Shown: positions 852-7,631 of the stretch, piece after piece
Layout: each line of letters opens with the position of its first letter
How positions within the stretch are numbered: the first letter of the stretch is position 1
Sequence record: NC_061418.1
DNA length: 64,000 nucleotides
Reading direction: 5' to 3' (one strand)
Made by a program: the position numbers and the translations under genes
Notes under the pieces: model-generated
Databases searched by the model: none
Told to the model about the DNA's origin: nothing
The model's input: only the letters and a program-made list of their open reading frames with translations

Positions 852-1739
852 TTAAATAAAGTTCCACTCTGCCCATTCTGGTCGTTTAGAATAGCAACGG
901 GCGTAAACTTCTCTCGGTTGAATAGATTCTCCCTGAGAGCATTTGAAAGCGTTTTGGTACTCTTTCTTACCTACTTTCACTCTTCGCTTGTAATCCGGGT
1001 TATTCGGATTTTTACTTTTTGGCTTCTGACGAGACTCGGCGAATTTATCACGCCAAACCGGTTTGGTTTTTCTTTCCTGTCCGTAGTCGTCGCTCTGATC
1101 TTCAGTAACCGTAGGGTAACCTTGACGAGTGTCTTTCCACCACATAGAGAAACCTTTTGAAACTGCCCAGCATTTCTCATGGTCGTTCACTAACAAGAAT
1201 CGTGACGCCAGTAAATTGATAGGGGTAGCATCAAAAGCGTTCTGAAGGACTTTGCTACTATGGATACCCAGGCGAAGAAATTCTTCTGTTTGTACTACTG
1301 CGTGCCTTGGCATTCGACTGACTTCACTATAGTACACCGCGGAGTCTTTCGGATGGTAAACTACAACGCCCTCTATCGTCTTATCATTAACGTCGGGAAT
1401 CTTCAATCCGTTAATGATAGTCCAATCCGGGAAATGTTTAGGGTCACGATTTGCAAAGTGTAACCAAACCGTGTCATCTTTCCATTCTGCTTTTTGTAAC
1501 CCGTAACCCATCCGAACCTTAAAGAATTCCTCTTCGTGCTCTTTGAGAAAGCGTTCGTAGAGATCTTTGAAGATAGGGATCAATTCTACCGGTTTACGTG
1601 AAACAAATTGTTGCACCGACCATTCCAATAGGCAATGGGAGAGAATCATCCAATCGCTATTCTCATTAGCCAGTGTAGTCATTGATTTACGGAGCCTATG
1701 GCTCAACGTCAAAATAATGACAACGGTTGAGTTATCCAT
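852..1739 (-). CDS. Hypothetical protein with C-terminal NUMOD1/HTH-like DNA-binding segment
   Basis: C-terminus KRRVKVGKKEYQNAFKCSQGESIQPREVYARCYSKRPEWAEWNFI resembles the DNA-binding tails of phage homing endonucleases; RBS GAGGA. Confidence 0.5.
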   Translation of the reverse strand: MDNSTVVIILTLSHRLRKSMTTLANENSDWMILSHCLLEWSVQQFVSRKPVELIPIFKDLYERFLKEHEEEFFKVRMGYGLQKAEWKDDTVWLHFANRDPKHFPDWTIINGLKIPDVNDKTIEGVVVYHPKDSAVYYSEVSRMPRHAVVQTEEFLRLGIHSSKVLQNAFDATPINLLASRFLLVNDHEKCWAVSKGFSMWWKDTRQGYPTVTEDQSDDYGQERKTKPVWRDKFAESRQKPKSKNPNNPDYKRRVKVGKKEYQNAFKCSQGESIQPREVYARCYSKRPEWAEWNFI

Positions 1740-1798
1740 AAATTCCTCAATTAAAAAGTGTCTTCTACATTAAAACGGTTTACCGTAAAAAAGCATAG

Positions 1799-1826
1799 GA
1801 GAGAGGAGGGAATTCCCTCCTCTCTC
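1799..1826 (-). terminator. Rho-independent terminator
   Basis: 12-bp stem GAGAGAGGAGGG-AATT-CCCTCCTCTCTC with a T-tract shortly downstream on the minus strand. Confidence 0.8.
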
Positions 1827-1992
1827 GATTAATTCATTTATCAAAAAGTGATCTCTTTGAAAAAGAAACTTTTGTGGTAAGAAGGGCGGAGGTAAGGATA
1901 TAACCATCCCCAACACCGCCCATAGCCATTCAGCTATAAACAGAATTTAGCGCGACCTATCTAAGAATAAGATTGGAAGTTTTATTTTATAA

Positions 1993-2087
1993 TCTAGTGC
2001 TCTACCGGCTGAGCTATCTGCCTCCAAGAAACACTCTGTGAATGTGTCCAGGTAGGCAGAGCGGAATTCGAATCCGCGACCTCTAGA
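1993..2087 (-). ncRNA. Circularly permuted tRNA-like module B (YrlA-like)
   Basis: Minus-strand order: TCTAG, AGGTC, T arm GCGGA-TTCGAAT-TCCGC, acceptor 3' strand TCTGCCT-A-CC, hairpin linker, acceptor 5' strand AGGCAGA, TA, D arm GCTC-AGCCGGTA-GAGC, A, CTAGA. All four stems pair. Confidence 0.85.
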
Positions 2088-2190
2088 ATTCTTTCCGTAA
2101 AAGAAAGAAAGTTCAGTCCGCTATTTTACTGTTTACTCTTTATCTTTAAGCGTGTGAGGCGATAAGATAAAGTTAACACTAACCATCTGG

Positions 2191-2305
2191 GTCGCATTAT
2201 GGGTGCATTGATGACTGCGTCTACCAATTCCGCCATTCTCCCATAGTTTGGTGGGAGAAGAAAGAGTCGAACTTCCAGTGGGGTCATCACACCTGCAACA
2301 CGGAC
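2191..2305 (-). ncRNA. Circularly permuted tRNA-like module A (YrlA-like, Leu-type D loop)
   Basis: Minus-strand order: TGATGAC, CCCACT, T arm GGAAG-TTCGACT-CTTTC, TTCTCCC-A-CCA, AACTAT linker, GGGAGAA, TG-GCGGAATTGGTAGACGC, A, GTCATCA. Outer bulged helix GTC(C)GTGT/ATGCGAC. Confidence 0.85.
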
Positions 2306-2378
2306 TAACAATAAAGATAAGGTTGGCCTCAATCTTTATTATCAATGGGCACTCGTGAGAATACCCATTACTAACACA

Positions 2379-3146
2379 TTAAGCAGTGAAGTTTTTCAGA
2401 ATCACGTTGGTCAGTACTTCGCCGATAGAACCCTGAACAACTTCGGTGCAGTTTGCACGCATACGTGCATTAGTGACTTCAACGATCAGTTCGTCGATAT
2501 CACGCAGTGCGTTGGCTTTCTGCATCGGGGTGCAGGCGCCGGAATAACTTTTACGGGTGAAGCTACCAATTACGACGGTGCTTTCCGATTCTTTCACCTG
2601 TGCAGGGTGGTGGTCGGTAGCCGGCGCCAGGATAACCGGAGTGAGTACTTTCTCGGTTTTCGTCGTGACTTCGTCCGTCACGGTACGGAATCCGTAGGTG
2701 CTGTTGCTATCGCGTTCCCATTGTTTGGACGAATCCAGAGTAGGGGCAGCGGCGATCAGTTTGCGCAGTTCCGCCAGGCGTTTTTCCAGGCCCAGGAGTT
2801 CATCTACCGGCACTCCAGAAACGAGGACTTCGCCTTTGAACATGATGTCTGCTTTTGCGACCTGGTTAGTCAGGGCTTTTTGCAGGCGAAGGTCTTCTGC
2901 CGTGGCGAAATATTCGAAGAGGTACTGCAGCGTTTCGGCAACAGTGGTGATCACTGCCTTGCTGGTACTTTCGCTTTTTTCGATCGCGGCGTTGGCGTCG
3001 TTGTCTTCGTGCAGTTTCAGGGTTTTATCAAACCCGCTGAAATATTCAGCCGATTTATTGAATTTTTTACTGGCGTCTTCGATCAGGACTTGCACTTGTT
3101 TGGTGCGAGTGGGTTCTGCTGCCAATACTTCGTGTAACTTAGCCAT
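2379..3146 (-). CDS. Conserved hypothetical coiled-coil-rich protein (family recalled as DUF7873, unverified)
   Basis: 255 aa, strong codon bias, RBS AAGGA. The segments AKADIMFKG..VPV..LL.LEK.L and K.EK...P..L.PAT..HPAQV match a widespread phage/bacterial family I recognise from memory. Confidence 0.6.
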   Translation of the reverse strand: MAKLHEVLAAEPTRTKQVQVLIEDASKKFNKSAEYFSGFDKTLKLHEDNDANAAIEKSESTSKAVITTVAETLQYLFEYFATAEDLRLQKALTNQVAKADIMFKGEVLVSGVPVDELLGLEKRLAELRKLIAAAPTLDSSKQWERDSNSTYGFRTVTDEVTTKTEKVLTPVILAPATDHHPAQVKESESTVVIGSFTRKSYSGACTPMQKANALRDIDELIVEVTNARMRANCTEVVQGSIGEVLTNVILKNFTA

Positions 3147-3247
3147 TTGATTTCCTTACGATAAGAGTGAAAATAAAGTTTGTTCATAAACTAGTTAACG
3201 ACGTAAAATAAAAAAAAAGAAAGGGCGTACCCTTTCTTTTTGGCAGA

Positions 3248-3826
3248 TTAATCTACCATAGCCAACCGTAAAACCACCCCGCTGTAATGACCGCCTAAAT
3301 CCATACGACTGGCCAAAATCCACTGGAAGCCAAACGCTCTCGCAATGTAGCGAAACCCTGCGACATTAACGGCCGGTTCGTACCGATCACCGTCAACATC
3401 ATCCGGCAGATTACGTTGGTGAACTTGTGCCATTAAAGAATCGAAATCTGGGAGTAGCTTATAAGCGTACTCGACTAAAATATCTTTCATCCAGACGACG
3501 TACACCTCGCAGTCAAAACTTTCCATTACCGGAGTAATAGATAACCGCGTAATATTGCGCGCTTTATCTTCCAGCGTATATGCTTTGATTTGACGCACTC
3601 CGGCGGCATAAAGTTCGTCGAGTGTTTCGTTGAGTTCGTAATTAAAAGGGAGATCAAACCCAAGGATATTTTTAGCGTCATTCTCTACGTCCAGGTCAAC
3701 GATGCTCGTTCCAGGGGGCGAGATATGGGTAACCGTGATAAGAATGTGTTTGGCAGTGGAAGCAGAAACTTTTCCGGCCAAGTTAAACGCAGCAACAAAT
3801 TTTCCTAACGAGATTAATTCTGACAT
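3248..3826 (-). CDS. Hypothetical protein
   Basis: 192-aa ORF with RBS AGGAG, bounded by terminator hairpins. Confidence 0.7.
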   Translation of the reverse strand: MSELISLGKFVAAFNLAGKVSASTAKHILITVTHISPPGTSIVDLDVENDAKNILGFDLPFNYELNETLDELYAAGVRQIKAYTLEDKARNITRLSITPVMESFDCEVYVVWMKDILVEYAYKLLPDFDSLMAQVHQRNLPDDVDGDRYEPAVNVAGFRYIARAFGFQWILASRMDLGGHYSGVVLRLAMVD

Positions 3827-4664: not shown

Positions 4665-5834
4665 TTAAATAAAACTTGTTTTGATCATACTTTCAGTTTC
4701 GATGAAGGTCTCCCAGTTTAATGCTTCCGCCAACGTGATTTTCTCACGACCAGCGAAATCTACCGGTTCGAGATCAACTGCGCTCCGGGCCTTCGCTGCT
4801 TCGGTTTCGTTTAACGTTCTGAATGACAGGGCTTTAAACAAACGGCCGGGGCGAATAATTGCATTATCGACTGACTTGAGGTTAAGTAAGTTAGTTGAGA
4901 TAATGAATTTGACGTTACCGGAAGTGATCCCCTCTGCGGCGTTTAATAAACCGGACATTAAGCTATTACCGTTTTCGCGACGCTCCAGCATAACTAGCTG
5001 GTCTTCGGTGACGAGCCAAGTACCGTCATCCAAATCATGGATATACGGAACAATAGATGGCGAATTGAGTACGTCTGCAGTATCCGCTACAACGACGTTA
5101 TCATTTTTTTGTTCATTTTTCCACCGTATCATTTCACGAATGAACTGACTCTTACCTAACCCTGGTGCACCATAAAGGACTAAAACATTATTGTTTGATT
5201 TATCAAATGCTTCCGCCAATTCCGCAGGGGATAATGAGAAATAAGGCCAGAATCCCTTAAAGTCTTTTATCTCTTTTTTATCTTGCAGTCGTTTGTTCCG
5301 CGCAACGACATTACCGGCAGCATTCAGCGACAAACGAGAAACCGTTTCCGGTAAGCGGGCCGTGAAGAACGTACTGATGATTTCCCCGAACCCTTGACAG
5401 AGATCGTCAGGCCCGTAACAGAATACAAAGTTTTCTGAGACACCGGACCCAAAATAGAGCATCCCTACAATCTCTCCTCGTAGGTTAGCGAGAAGGAATG
5501 CCCCAGGAATAATTTCGGTGTAAACAAAAGTGTCGAATTTCGAGAGGTAATTACGTAACTGATTGGAAAGCAGTTCCTCAACACTTTTCCCTAAGTCGCG
5601 TGCATTCCCTGTTAACCAAAACCCTTTCCTTGAGAAACCCATAGGGCGATTATTGACCCCCAAGAAAATTTTGATCGCTTTTTTAACATGGTCGCCGTTA
5701 CTTCGACCTTCAACATTTATCCGGCAGTAAATATCGAAAAATTCCATCATTTCTTCTTTGAGCTTACCTGAATCGGCGCGTGCATTTGACGTAAAATCTT
5801 TAGTCAAAACATTGTTTTTACTTTCATTAGCCAT
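4665..5834 (-). CDS. AAA+ ATPase with N-terminal extension
   Basis: Walker A GAPGLGKS, Walker B-like LVTED, sensor-1 IISTN, second region of homology DNAIIRPGR. Confidence 0.85.
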   Translation of the reverse strand: MANESKNNVLTKDFTSNARADSGKLKEEMMEFFDIYCRINVEGRSNGDHVKKAIKIFLGVNNRPMGFSRKGFWLTGNARDLGKSVEELLSNQLRNYLSKFDTFVYTEIIPGAFLLANLRGEIVGMLYFGSGVSENFVFCYGPDDLCQGFGEIISTFFTARLPETVSRLSLNAAGNVVARNKRLQDKKEIKDFKGFWPYFSLSPAELAEAFDKSNNNVLVLYGAPGLGKSQFIREMIRWKNEQKNDNVVVADTADVLNSPSIVPYIHDLDDGTWLVTEDQLVMLERRENGNSLMSGLLNAAEGITSGNVKFIISTNLLNLKSVDNAIIRPGRLFKALSFRTLNETEAAKARSAVDLEPVDFAGREKITLAEALNWETFIETESMIKTSFI

Positions 5835-6362: not shown

Positions 6363-7631
6363 TTAACGACCGATAAAGCCGCCTTGTTTGATCTCGCTTT
6401 GCAGCGCCTGATACGCTTCCCAGTTTAATGCTTCCGCTAAGCTGAGTTTGGACACGTTACCGAAATCAATTGGAGGATGCCCTATCGCAGCGCGGGCGGC
6501 ATTAGCTTGATCAGCTGTTAACGCTTTGAACGGGATGACGCGTAAAGTACGACCTGGACGATACAGGGCATGATCAACGTCTTTTAACGACGTGATGTTA
6601 GTTGAGATAATGAATTTGACATTACCAGAGGTGATCCCTTCGGCAGCATTCAGTATCCCAGCCATCAGACTGTTACCCATATCACGTGCTTCGATCATTT
6701 CATGGGCGTCTTCAGTCACCAACCAGCTGTTACTTGGCATGTCGTGAACGTAAGGTGTAAACCGCGGGGATTTAAATACCGGGTTATCGTCGCAAACAAA
6801 TACGGTACCGTAAGAGTTCTCATCTTTCCACTTGATCATCTCGGCGATATATTGGCTCTTACCTAACCCTGGCTCGCCGTACAAAATCAGTACGTTCGAG
6901 TCACTGGCTTCAAACTCGGCTGCCATCTCACGAGGTGACTTGGGTGCGAATGGCCAAAAGGCTTTTGGATCGGTAACTGTGCGCCGTTGTTTCAGTGTTT
7001 TATATTGACTTTGAACATCATTGTTACCTGTTAAACAGAGCCGACGAATGGTAATATTCTTCTCTTTATTCTGGAAGCTGTTGAAAATATCTTTGAGGAT
7101 TTTCCCGATCGAAAAGTCACCAACGTAAAAAAATCTTTGTTGGCTACCATTATCTTCTATTTGGCATGTCCCTACAATTTTATCATCACGAAAGATAAAG
7201 AAGCTCCTGTGGCTAAATGGTTCAGTATAGATTCCGTACTGATTCATTTTGTCCAAGAAAAGTTTCAGTACTTCCATTTCAAATTGAAAGGCCGTATCAC
7301 CAAAAGGACGTTCGTAGTTAATGAACGTTTGAATACTCACTGCTTCCCTTTCAAGCAGTTGAAAGAAACGCATTAGCAATACCTGACTATTTAAGTTTTC
7401 GCTAACTCGTTCTACCGTGGGGTAAAGTCCTTTAAAAATCAGACGGTGGAATTCTTTAATTTCTTCGTACTTTTTAGCGCGAGATGCTTCATTAAGCGGT
7501 GGGTAATTCAATAATATCTCATGGAAAATCGCAGTACGAGAAGATAATAGAGTATTAGTTTCTTCTTCAACTGCTTCTTCCCAAGGTGCTAGAAGTTCTA
7601 CTGATTCTTCGCGGAAAGCATGTAAGGACAT
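6363..7631 (-). CDS. AAA+ ATPase, paralog of 4665-5834
   Basis: GEPGLGKS, WLVTED, LNAAEGITSGNVKFIISTN, DHALYRPGR. Confidence 0.85.
   Translation of the reverse strand: MSLHAFREESVELLAPWEEAVEEETNTLLSSRTAIFHEILLNYPPLNEASRAKKYEEIKEFHRLIFKGLYPTVERVSENLNSQVLLMRFFQLLEREAVSIQTFINYERPFGDTAFQFEMEVLKLFLDKMNQYGIYTEPFSHRSFFIFRDDKIVGTCQIEDNGSQQRFFYVGDFSIGKILKDIFNSFQNKEKNITIRRLCLTGNNDVQSQYKTLKQRRTVTDPKAFWPFAPKSPREMAAEFEASDSNVLILYGEPGLGKSQYIAEMIKWKDENSYGTVFVCDDNPVFKSPRFTPYVHDMPSNSWLVTEDAHEMIEARDMGNSLMAGILNAAEGITSGNVKFIISTNITSLKDVDHALYRPGRTLRVIPFKALTADQANAARAAIGHPPIDFGNVSKLSLAEALNWEAYQALQSEIKQGGFIGR

Follow-up and report, generated by a model that had tools for sequence, protein, structure and literature searches.

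The stretch of sequence record NC_061418.1 considered here (64,000 nt, referred to as the window) carries on its minus strand a 255-amino-acid (aa) gene of Pfam family DUF7873, followed on the same strand by a structured RNA with two tRNA-like modules. Comparison of homologous loci showed that the DUF7873 gene and its downstream RNA are a conserved two-part cassette of large phages and of Actinobacteria, cyanobacteria and myxobacteria. We lean towards the view that the protein and the RNA would form a Y-RNA-like ribonucleoprotein (RNP) that is independent of Ro60. The module type is known; the protein partner, the RNA architecture and the distribution are new.

Positions 1700–3300 of the window are 100% identical to Klebsiella phage KpLz-2_45 (MN871446, 296.7 kb), a jumbo phage, 99% identical to several sister isolates and ∼90% identical to vB_KpM_FBKp24 (phiKp24, genus Maaswegvirus) and Centimanus. 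Nucleus-shell and tubulin-spindle proteins were reported for phiKp24 by its authors (bioRxiv 10.1101/2021.03.02.433402).

Two permuted tRNA-like modules follow the DUF7873 gene

The DUF7873 gene, taken from the open reading frame (ORF) list and from its match to PF25283, occupies 2379..3146 (−) with an ATG start. From its stop codon there are 552 nt to an intrinsic-terminator-like hairpin at 1826..1799 (−), which closes the unit with a 12-bp stem (8 GC) and a T-rich tail, and no terminator-like site was found on the minus strand between the two. An earlier reading of this DNA from its letters alone (the sequence-only reading) had described a gene stopping at 2379, no terminator for ∼550 nt and then a strong one at 1799–1826; the present analysis agrees on each point. 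It also bears out, by inspection of the sequence and by folding, the two permuted, anticodon-less tRNA modules with the topology of YrlA RNA that had been described in the intervening sequence.

Both modules present their elements in circularly permuted order: a T-arm, a 7-bp acceptor stem closed by a linker, a D-arm, and a 5-bp closure in the place of an anticodon stem. As read from the sequence, neither has an anticodon loop. Module 1 (2287..2211, −) consists of ATGAC, a 6-nt variable region, the T-arm GGAAG/TTCGACT/CTTTC, the acceptor 3′ strand TTCTCCC, ACCA (A73 plus CCA), AACTAT, the acceptor 5′ strand GGGAGAA, TG, the D-arm GCGGAATTGGTAGACGC, A and GTCAT. Its acceptor stem (TTCTCCC/GGGAGAA, closed by ACCAAACTAT) is paired at 7/7 positions and its closing stem (ATGAC/GTCAT) at 5/5, and the D-arm, TGGCGGAATTGGTAGACGC, is of the class-II, tRNA-Leu-like type. 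Module 2 (2087..1993, −) consists of TCTAG, AGGTC, the T-arm GCGGA/TTCGAAT/TCCGC, TCTGCCT, a 30-nt hairpin linker, AGGCAGA, TA, the D-arm GCTCAGCCGGTAGAGC, A and CTAGA. The linker hairpin is CAUUC-ACA-GAGUG, the D-arm, TAGCTCAGCCGGTAGAGC, is class-I, and the closing stem is TCTAG/CTAGA.

The minimum free energy (MFE) fold of a 584-nt stretch reproduced both modules at −205 kcal/mol (z = −8.45), a value equalled by none of 100 shuffled sequences. A covariance model, R1, was built from eight hand-delimited modules and spans the T-arm, the closed acceptor stem and the D-arm. It scored module 1 at 57.7 bits (E 2e-11) and module 2 at 83 bits (E 1.7e-17).

The gene and the RNA are linked across phages and bacterial chromosomes

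A tblastn search found DUF7873 in 75 phage records from very different hosts, including Ralstonia phiRSL1, Rhizobium RHph, Arthrobacter Mimi, Vibrio K479/D5xx, Gordonia Keelan/Ronaldo and cyanophages. In all five phages inspected, the gene lay in or beside a tRNA array and was followed by an unannotated gap of ∼150–480 nt, the smaller gaps being beside short, doubtful ORF calls. With Rfam in E-value mode, sub-threshold matches to YrlA or to a permuted junction of transfer-messenger RNA (tmRNA) fell within that gap in four phages; the fifth, Gordonia Keelan, has its modules further downstream, where R1 located them. The Keelan modules (5265–5326 and 5412–5503 of locus L008) lie past tRNA-Thr and inside a hypothetical coding sequence (CDS 126, 5268–5513), which is probably spurious.

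For a wider count, 80 loci were fetched from 412 viral contigs with a DUF7873 relative, of which 76 were not duplicates. R1 found at least one module on the gene strand after the stop codon in 72 of these 76, at a distance of 36–1300 nt (median 156 nt), with two modules in about one third of the loci. A search of one genome per prokaryotic species gave at least 578 cellular DUF7873 loci, mostly in Streptosporangiales (Nonomuraea, Actinomadura and others), Nostoc/Calothrix, Polyangiaceae and Burkholderiaceae metagenome-assembled genomes (MAGs). Where enough downstream sequence was available, 74 of 76 fetched cellular loci contained R1 modules, usually two, ∼80 and ∼230 nt past the stop codon. 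Over the viral and cellular sets together, most modules lay 40–350 nt past the stop. In all, ∼150 loci were studied in detail out of ∼1,000 gene matches in phage and bacterial collections, and ∼95% of those studied carry the RNA. The sequence-only reading had proposed a protein-plus-RNA module and had named the lack of a linked RNA beside homologues of the gene as evidence that would speak against it; since the homologues nearly always carry the RNA, the proposal has held up.

The surroundings of the cassette differ between the two groups. In phages it lies within or adjoining tRNA arrays, whereas on bacterial chromosomes tRNAs are absent nearby in most of the loci checked, and the neighbours are ordinary metabolic genes that vary by genus and are not prophage-like. 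Judged on gene order, the conserved unit is the DUF7873 gene plus the RNA, and nothing else. Two contigs binned as archaeal, in Bathyarchaeia (L098) and Promethearchaeota (L099) MAG bins, also carry DUF7873 with a downstream module; these may be viral contigs binned with their hosts.

The position of the phage cassettes inside or beside tRNA gene arrays suits the decoy role put forward in the sequence-only reading, in which the tRNA mimics would titrate tRNA-targeting defence effectors (PARIS AriB, PrrC/RloC, retron) or bind them via elbow and acceptor, and would in this way protect phage and host tRNAs. Phage tRNAs can counter tRNA-cleaving defences, and the modules mimic different tRNA classes, with A73 retained in all Leu-like modules. 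However, the cassette is equally common in chromosomal settings unrelated to prophages, an anticodon nuclease would have no anticodon loop to recognise or cut, and a decoy gives no role to the invariably linked protein, which has no match in PADLOC. The presence of the cassette in ordinary Streptosporangiales, Nostocales and Polyangiaceae neighbourhoods, together with the missing anticodon loop, weakens the decoy idea to the point that we consider it quite improbable, with some room left for effectors that would bind the elbow or acceptor.

The RNA structure is specific to the cassette and is under selection

R1 also matched junctions of adjacent tRNA genes, with scores of up to ∼47 bits, but the acceptor strands are unpaired there. 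Within a zone of 0–1400 nt downstream of the gene, 105 of 112 R1 matches had at least six of seven acceptor pairs and 102 had a perfect 7/7, compared with at least six of seven in 8 of 38 matches outside this zone, at least some of which are tRNA-gene junctions. R1 matched nothing in the 64-kb window, or in four 20-kb chromosomal contexts, apart from the modules directly past the DUF7873 gene.

The pairing is maintained while the sequence varies. The 101 distinct viral modules contain 91 different acceptor sequences, almost all of which are complementary along their full length. The 5-bp closing stem, placed like the anticodon stem of a tRNA, is fully paired in 54 of 93 modules; controls that mismatched upstream and downstream strands gave 9%. 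The whole ∼380-nt RNA was aligned for 34 sequences (alignment A7: 31 Streptosporangiales chromosomes, two Propionibacteriaceae MAGs and Arthrobacter phage Mimi), and the Mimi RNA aligned with the chromosomal RNAs throughout. The A7 consensus has 58 pairs in 11 helices, with both modules mounted on long-range helices. Of the alignment cells, 97.3% are paired, compared with 39–47% when the partners are slid by 1–3 columns; compensatory changes occur in 35 of the 58 pairs, and the observed values were reached by none of 500 shuffles. Single-stranded segments are also strongly conserved, for example ACUCAGAYUCUCGCUCCAGAUUCAGCA between the modules, as are shorter motifs of the UUAUCG(C/U) kind.

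The extent of the functional RNA was estimated from four close relatives (KpLz-2_45, LPKP23, phiKp24 and Centimanus). Between KpLz-2_45 and phiKp24, the first 395 nt past the stop codon (the core, 2380..1986) are 97.0% identical, while the 3′ tail (1985..1790) is 76% identical. For the DUF7873 gene in the comparison with phiKp24, codon positions 1 and 2 are 97–98% identical and third positions 71%. Since the core is conserved like the first two codon positions and the tail is close to the third-position, near-neutral rate, the functional RNA is taken to be the ∼395-nt stretch. This stretch comprises two 5′ hairpins, module 1, an inter-module hairpin, a further hairpin and module 2. Hairpin 1 (2344..2369, −; UAUUC-UCAC-GAGUG in the MFE fold) adjoins the stop codon and is invariant in the four relatives, hairpin 2 (AUAAUAAAGAU...AUCUUUAUU; 2310..2340, −) was found in the MFE fold, and the inter-module hairpin (2138..2172, −; MFE fold), which shows CUUAUCGCCUC as its loop, is again invariant in the four relatives.

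In the poorly conserved tail, delimited by identity comparison and containing further hairpins at 1827..1985 (−), some compensatory changes are visible among the four relatives, and the terminator-like hairpin at 1826..1799 has compensatory substitutions in phiKp24 and Centimanus. The additional stems ATAGC/GCTAT and GGGCGG/CCGCCC that the sequence-only reading had counted as part of the RNA do exist in the fold, but they lie in this nearly neutral tail, outside the conserved core. Going by the substitution pattern, the tail is probably a spacer.

Two smaller motifs stood out. The stem motif AUUC-N3-4-GAGU occurs both in the linker hairpin of module 2 (2033–2043, −) and in hairpin 1 (2351–2362, −), and also in the linkers of the closest relatives (45–50% identity), pointing to a recognition hairpin specific to one subfamily. 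It was rejected as a motif over-represented in general, AUUC-N3-5-GAGU being found 8 times in the window against 8.4 expected; it is a feature of the closest subfamily only. The second motif, (G)UUAUCGU (ATCGT), was present within 60 nt after 35 of 93 phage modules, compared with a background of 6%. Its form in the window is the loop CUUAUCGCCUC, with counterparts AUUAUCGCUCU in Arthrobacter phage Mimi and AUUCUCGCUCC in actinobacterial chromosomal RNAs. The same motif appears as TTATCGTAA in the 5′ untranslated region (UTR) of the DUF7873 gene (3156..3164, −), directly before the Shine–Dalgarno sequence AAGGAAA, where it could be a shared protein-binding or processing site. Upstream of the gene the motif is weakly enriched (13 of 74 viral loci), and an autoregulatory UUAUCGU site in the 5′ UTR, although present here, was set aside on that account.

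These data bear directly on the possibility that the modules are non-functional debris, that is, rearranged tRNA pseudogenes in a recombination-prone tRNA region. The phage loci do lie near tRNA arrays, and some have homing endonucleases nearby, but strong purifying selection, extensive covariation and conservation across phyla and outside tRNA arrays effectively refute this explanation and leave it a negligible probability.

Relation to YrlA Y RNAs and Ro60

YrlA RNAs are a tRNA-mimicking class of bacterial Y RNAs, found beside Ro60 in >250 bacteria and phages (Chen et al. 2014, PMC4201824). At gathering thresholds, no Rfam 15 family matched the window RNA. In E-value mode, module 2 matched YrlA (RF02553) with 37.6 bits (E 3.7e-6), below the gathering score of 69, and module 1 was not reported. 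The alignment covers the T-arm, the closed acceptor-like stem and the D-arm in YrlA order, while the outer stems of the YrlA model align to module 2 with non-canonical pairs. In Nonomuraea and five phages, a sub-threshold YrlA match lies in the same gap past the DUF7873 gene.

The Y RNA just upstream of the Ro-like gp220 in mycobacteriophage Bxz1 (L089 9980–10056) provided a yardstick, scoring 32.5 bits with YrlA and 38.8 bits with R1. As this RNA too is below the gathering score, failure at the threshold does not separate the window RNAs from genuine phage Y RNAs. By the same token, Rfam annotation at gathering thresholds would miss the Bxz1 Y RNA and may miss others like it. The comparison with the Rfam YrlA model, which the sequence-only reading had called for, gave a score short of family membership, like that of the Bxz1 RNA, and the modules are of the same structural kind.

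The protein side of the comparison gave a different result. No TROVE gene was detected by tblastn in the 64-kb window, as had been noted from the letters alone. A tblastn search with the Bxz1 Ro protein returned 356 phage records, none of which was a DUF7873-bearing Klebsiella, Serratia, Ralstonia, Rhizobium or Arthrobacter phage; the same search found distant homologues in Agrobacterium, Sinorhizobium and Vibrio phages, so its sensitivity was adequate. There was no TROVE gene within ±3 kb of 160 loci. When all 175 loci and the window were searched by tblastn, the only TROVE match was in Nonomuraea (L170/L171/L172 2809–4409), 5.6 kb upstream of the DUF7873 cassette and separated from it by seven unrelated genes. 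Among the four 20-kb contexts Nonomuraea is thus the one with a TROVE gene, and none was found within 10 kb in Actinomadura, Calothrix or Polyangiaceae. Neither Rfam nor R1 detected a YrlA-like RNA beside the Nonomuraea TROVE gene; the sole tRNA-like RNAs in those 20 kb are the ones after DUF7873. The window RNA lacks the Ro60-binding motif GNCGAAN0-1G, which also showed no enrichment in 157 loci relative to upstream controls.

The RNA therefore resembles YrlA in the order of its elements, in its canonical T-loop (TTCRANY) and D-loop GG, in a 7-bp acceptor like that of Mycobacterium smegmatis YrlA, in Rfam scores like those of a true Ro-adjacent phage Y RNA, and in its occurrence in both phages and bacteria. 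It differs in lacking a neighbouring Ro60/TROVE gene and, in the phages, a Ro60/TROVE gene at any genomic position, in missing the GNCGAAN0-1G motif, in having as its invariable neighbour DUF7873, which is unrelated to TROVE, and in often combining two modules of different tRNA class with other conserved motifs in one ∼400-nt RNA.

An ordinary YrlA Y RNA serving a host or distant Ro60, with DUF7873 merely a syntenic neighbour, would account for the shared topology and the Bxz1-like scores, and it would draw support from Nonomuraea, where a TROVE gene without a detected Y RNA of its own lies 5.6 kb away. It does not account for the absence of TROVE from the phage records and from the loci searched, for a Ro60-binding motif that is missing here and not enriched elsewhere, or for a DUF7873 adjacency that holds across phyla while all other neighbours change, and we regard it as highly doubtful.

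In the literature on YrlA and Y RNAs, permuted tRNAs and noncoding RNAs in phages, no description of the DUF7873–RNA pairing was found; Iyer et al., surveying jumbo phages, refer only to TROVE and a tRNA-like partner, present in a small subset of phages.

Comparison with tRNA, tmRNA and an annotated suppressor tRNA

A conventional tRNA or tmRNA gene was rejected, as ARAGORN reported neither in the 64-kb window and Rfam gave no tRNA match in the RNA region. In LPKP23, phiKp24 and Centimanus, however, tRNA finders call 'tRNA-Sup-TTA' or 'tRNA-Stop(tta)' at the equivalent of 2134..2051 (−) in the window (L001 3288–3367, L002 3352–3435 and L003 3289–3372), and the phiKp24 genome paper treats this call as a suppressor tRNA (bioRxiv 10.1101/2021.03.02.433402). 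Read on the sequence, the call takes the hairpin UUCUUUC-UUUUACG-GAAAGAA (2109..2089, −) as the 'anticodon arm' and combines it with the module 2 T-arm and an alternative acceptor of 6/7 pairs. Its D-arm is poor. With the permuted fold, the acceptor pairs at 7/7 positions and the D-arm is canonical, and >200 homologues share this fold. In the window a single base difference (G to A) in the alternative acceptor strand reduces it to 5/7, and ARAGORN is silent here. The phiKp24 suppressor tRNA is thus very probably a gene-finder artefact, a mis-call of module 2.

A true split or permuted tRNA, which after RNase P cleavage and CCA maturation would be aminoacylated and serve as an amino-acid donor or in translation, is a broader version of the same idea and includes the UAA-suppressor reading. 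The frequent encoded NCCA and the tRNA-Sup-TTA annotation in relatives point this way, and A73 with a Leu-like D-arm fits the identity rules of leucyl-tRNA synthetase, which ignore the anticodon. Yet an anticodon loop is missing, the helix in the anticodon-stem position continues into long helices, a free CCA is lacking in most cellular and all long-linker modules, and ARAGORN calls nothing in the window, where the suppressor reading would have to use a 5/7 acceptor (6/7 in the relatives) and the poor D-arm. Such a tRNA is very improbable.

Three known systems invite comparison. Rfam gave a partial match to positions 86–150 of beta_tmRNA (24.8 bits, gathering score 84), which reflects the permuted order of T-arm and acceptor 3′ strand (CCA), intervening loop, and acceptor 5′ strand. 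Two-piece tmRNA with SmpB shares this order and has a dedicated small protein encoded with a tRNA mimic. However, the modules have real D-arms; no G3:U70 pair was seen in the acceptor stems inspected by eye, nor was a tag frame or pseudoknot series noticed by eye, although tag ORFs were not systematically searched; DUF7873 has no SmpB family match in Pfam; and ARAGORN reports no tmRNA. The circularly permuted tRNA genes of Cyanidioschyzon merolae and some archaea likewise place the 3′ half upstream of the 5′ half, joined via the acceptor ends, and RNase P and 3′-end processing at the acceptor is expected for both; those genes restore a full anticodon loop by circularisation, while here there is no anticodon loop or bulge–helix–bulge and the stem runs on into long helices. 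Finally, there are phage-encoded tRNAs and stable RNAs of phage tRNA regions with no assigned function, such as the T4 species 1 and 2 RNAs, which have no known dedicated protein partner. Compared by description, these too belong to tRNA clusters of phages, and host tRNA enzymes probably process them.

The DUF7873 protein

The 255-aa protein matches DUF7873 (PF25283) over residues 1–251 with 243.8 bits (cut-off 27, E 2.7e-72). An AlphaFold2 model from a 30-sequence alignment was confident, with a predicted local distance difference test score of 89.8 and a predicted template modelling score of 0.66. In this model the protein has long helices and a beta-sheet whose long hairpin bears the near-invariant motif ATDKHPAQ.

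Attempts to assign the family to a known one were negative. A cryptic TROVE protein or another known fold was rejected: hhalign against TROVE gave a probability of 0.1%, the Pfam scan returned DUF7873 alone, a PDB sequence search had no matches, and Foldseek with the model found no significant structural match in PDB or BFVD. The protein is also about half the length of the TROVE proteins compared (530–552 aa). A known phage or defence family was similarly rejected, with no matches in PHROGs, NCBIfam or the PADLOC defence models (2023 library). Among the homologues listed from ∼5.8 billion proteins there were no informative names, and a literature search found no paper naming DUF7873. In Polyangiaceae, a 521-aa VWA-domain protein (MAG locus L175, 8397–9962) ends 39 nt before the DUF7873 gene; it was considered as a Ro-like protein and discarded, its VWA domain lying at residues 120–290 and TROVE giving no match.

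Processing features and a model for the cassette

Several features of the modules resemble processing signals. The acceptor stem is 7 bp in all modules. N-CCA follows directly after the acceptor 3′ strand in 62 of 101 viral and 32 of 131 cellular modules, where 1.6% is expected by chance. In short viral linkers U(−1) is present in 23 of 33, and the first acceptor base is G(+1) in 71–83% of modules. The U(−1), G(+1) and CCA pattern corresponds to bacterial RNase P preferences, and the lower CCA frequency in Actinobacteria modules parallels actinobacterial tRNA genes, which mostly have no encoded CCA. There is a precedent in M. smegmatis YrlA, which is cleaved by RNase P in vitro and in vivo, receives CCA, and was the sole one of three Y RNAs tested by Chen et al. 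to have a 7-bp acceptor (PMC4201824). These features and this precedent together suggest that a precursor would be cut at each module into pieces that stay base-paired and end in CCA.

In the RNP model that we favour, the RNA would be produced together with the DUF7873 mRNA or immediately following it. It would be cleaved by RNase P at the acceptor stems and its 3′ ends would mature to CCA, as for M. smegmatis YrlA. The RNA product and the DUF7873 protein would then assemble into an RNP in the role that Ro60–Y RNA has elsewhere, with DUF7873 gripping the RNA outside its tRNA-like domains. The elbow and acceptor of these domains would be a handle for tRNA-handling proteins, such as processing, modification, repair and turnover enzymes, and in phages the RNP might help to maintain or protect the tRNA pool while the host is infected. 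Of the options in the sequence-only reading, this model retains the RNA as a scaffold for the 255-aa protein, standing in for Ro60; the binding itself is what we infer. More tentatively, and with somewhat less confidence than we would need to assert it, the cassette may represent a previously unrecognised and widespread class of RNP, common to large phages, Actinobacteria, cyanobacteria and myxobacteria, in which RNase P would cut a ∼400-nt precursor into base-paired pieces with one or two exposed CCA-ended, anticodon-less tRNA bodies, through which the protein would engage the tRNA machinery. Such a class would be a second, Ro60-independent solution to the job of Y RNA, possibly with a chargeable split tRNA.

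A number of observations weigh against the RNP model. It requires transcription, processing and protein–RNA binding, each of which we infer. No module was detectable at five loci (L043, L067, L077, L083 and L147). Long-linker modules such as module 2, in which the CCA pairs with UGG, may stay closed and resist RNase P. In genomes with both genes, Ro60 may borrow the DUF7873-linked RNA. No recognisable RNA-binding fold was found in DUF7873, which by eye looks rich in acidic residues. Lastly, the RNA is always downstream of the gene on the same strand, which would fit a cis-acting 3′-UTR element equally well.

Such an element is the main rival to the RNP model. The modules would then be signals for RNase P and tRNA maturation, setting and shielding the 3′ end of the DUF7873 mRNA, comparable to MALAT1–mascRNA or tRNA-punctuated transcripts, with no role in trans and no protein binding. 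Besides the constant position, the lack of a terminator-like site between gene and RNA in the window and the hallmarks of an RNase P substrate are as this explanation predicts. For this purpose, however, one module would suffice, yet many loci keep a Leu-like and a class-I module in fixed order; conservation as high as that of the modules extends to ∼200 nt of non-tRNA sequence, to long-range helices and to single-stranded motifs; and the core is more constrained than a typical processing signal. We judge a purely cis-acting role unlikely.

What the tRNA-like domain of bacterial Y RNAs is for has been a puzzle since 2014, and here a domain of the same kind occurs with a wholly different small protein. 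This suggests that the tRNA mimic is a portable functional part whose protein partner can be swapped, and it offers a second, independent system for testing the domain. The linked structured RNA would give DUF7873 a first context, and the RNA defines a family without an Rfam match at gathering thresholds. The comparison also corrects the published 'suppressor tRNA' annotation in phiKp24-like Klebsiella jumbo phages and supplies a candidate to be considered when asking why tRNA arrays occur in large phages.

Other features of the locus

The 5′ boundary of the transcription unit is set by a terminator-like hairpin at 3214..3241 (−), a 12-bp stem followed by a T run, which ends the upstream gene. 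The phiKp24 annotation has a predicted promoter 34–65 nt past the DUF7873 stop codon, at the position of hairpin 2. A second BLAST match of the RNA in the same genome was dismissed, being merely the palindromic terminator matching itself.

Several mechanical ORFs overlap the cassette. ORF 2355–3137 (+) is an antisense shadow of the DUF7873 gene and probably no gene, and the same probably applies to ORFs 2126–2332, 2133–2345 and 1770–1916 (−), which cross the tRNA-like modules or the RNA tail; the last of these is recorded in phiKp24 as a 38-aa CDS (gp047). Two paralogous AAA-type ATPase genes, at 4665–5834 (−) and 6363–7631 (−), lie 1.5–4.5 kb upstream of the cassette; their products, of 389 and 422 aa, both match phrog_14322, a family with no function assigned.

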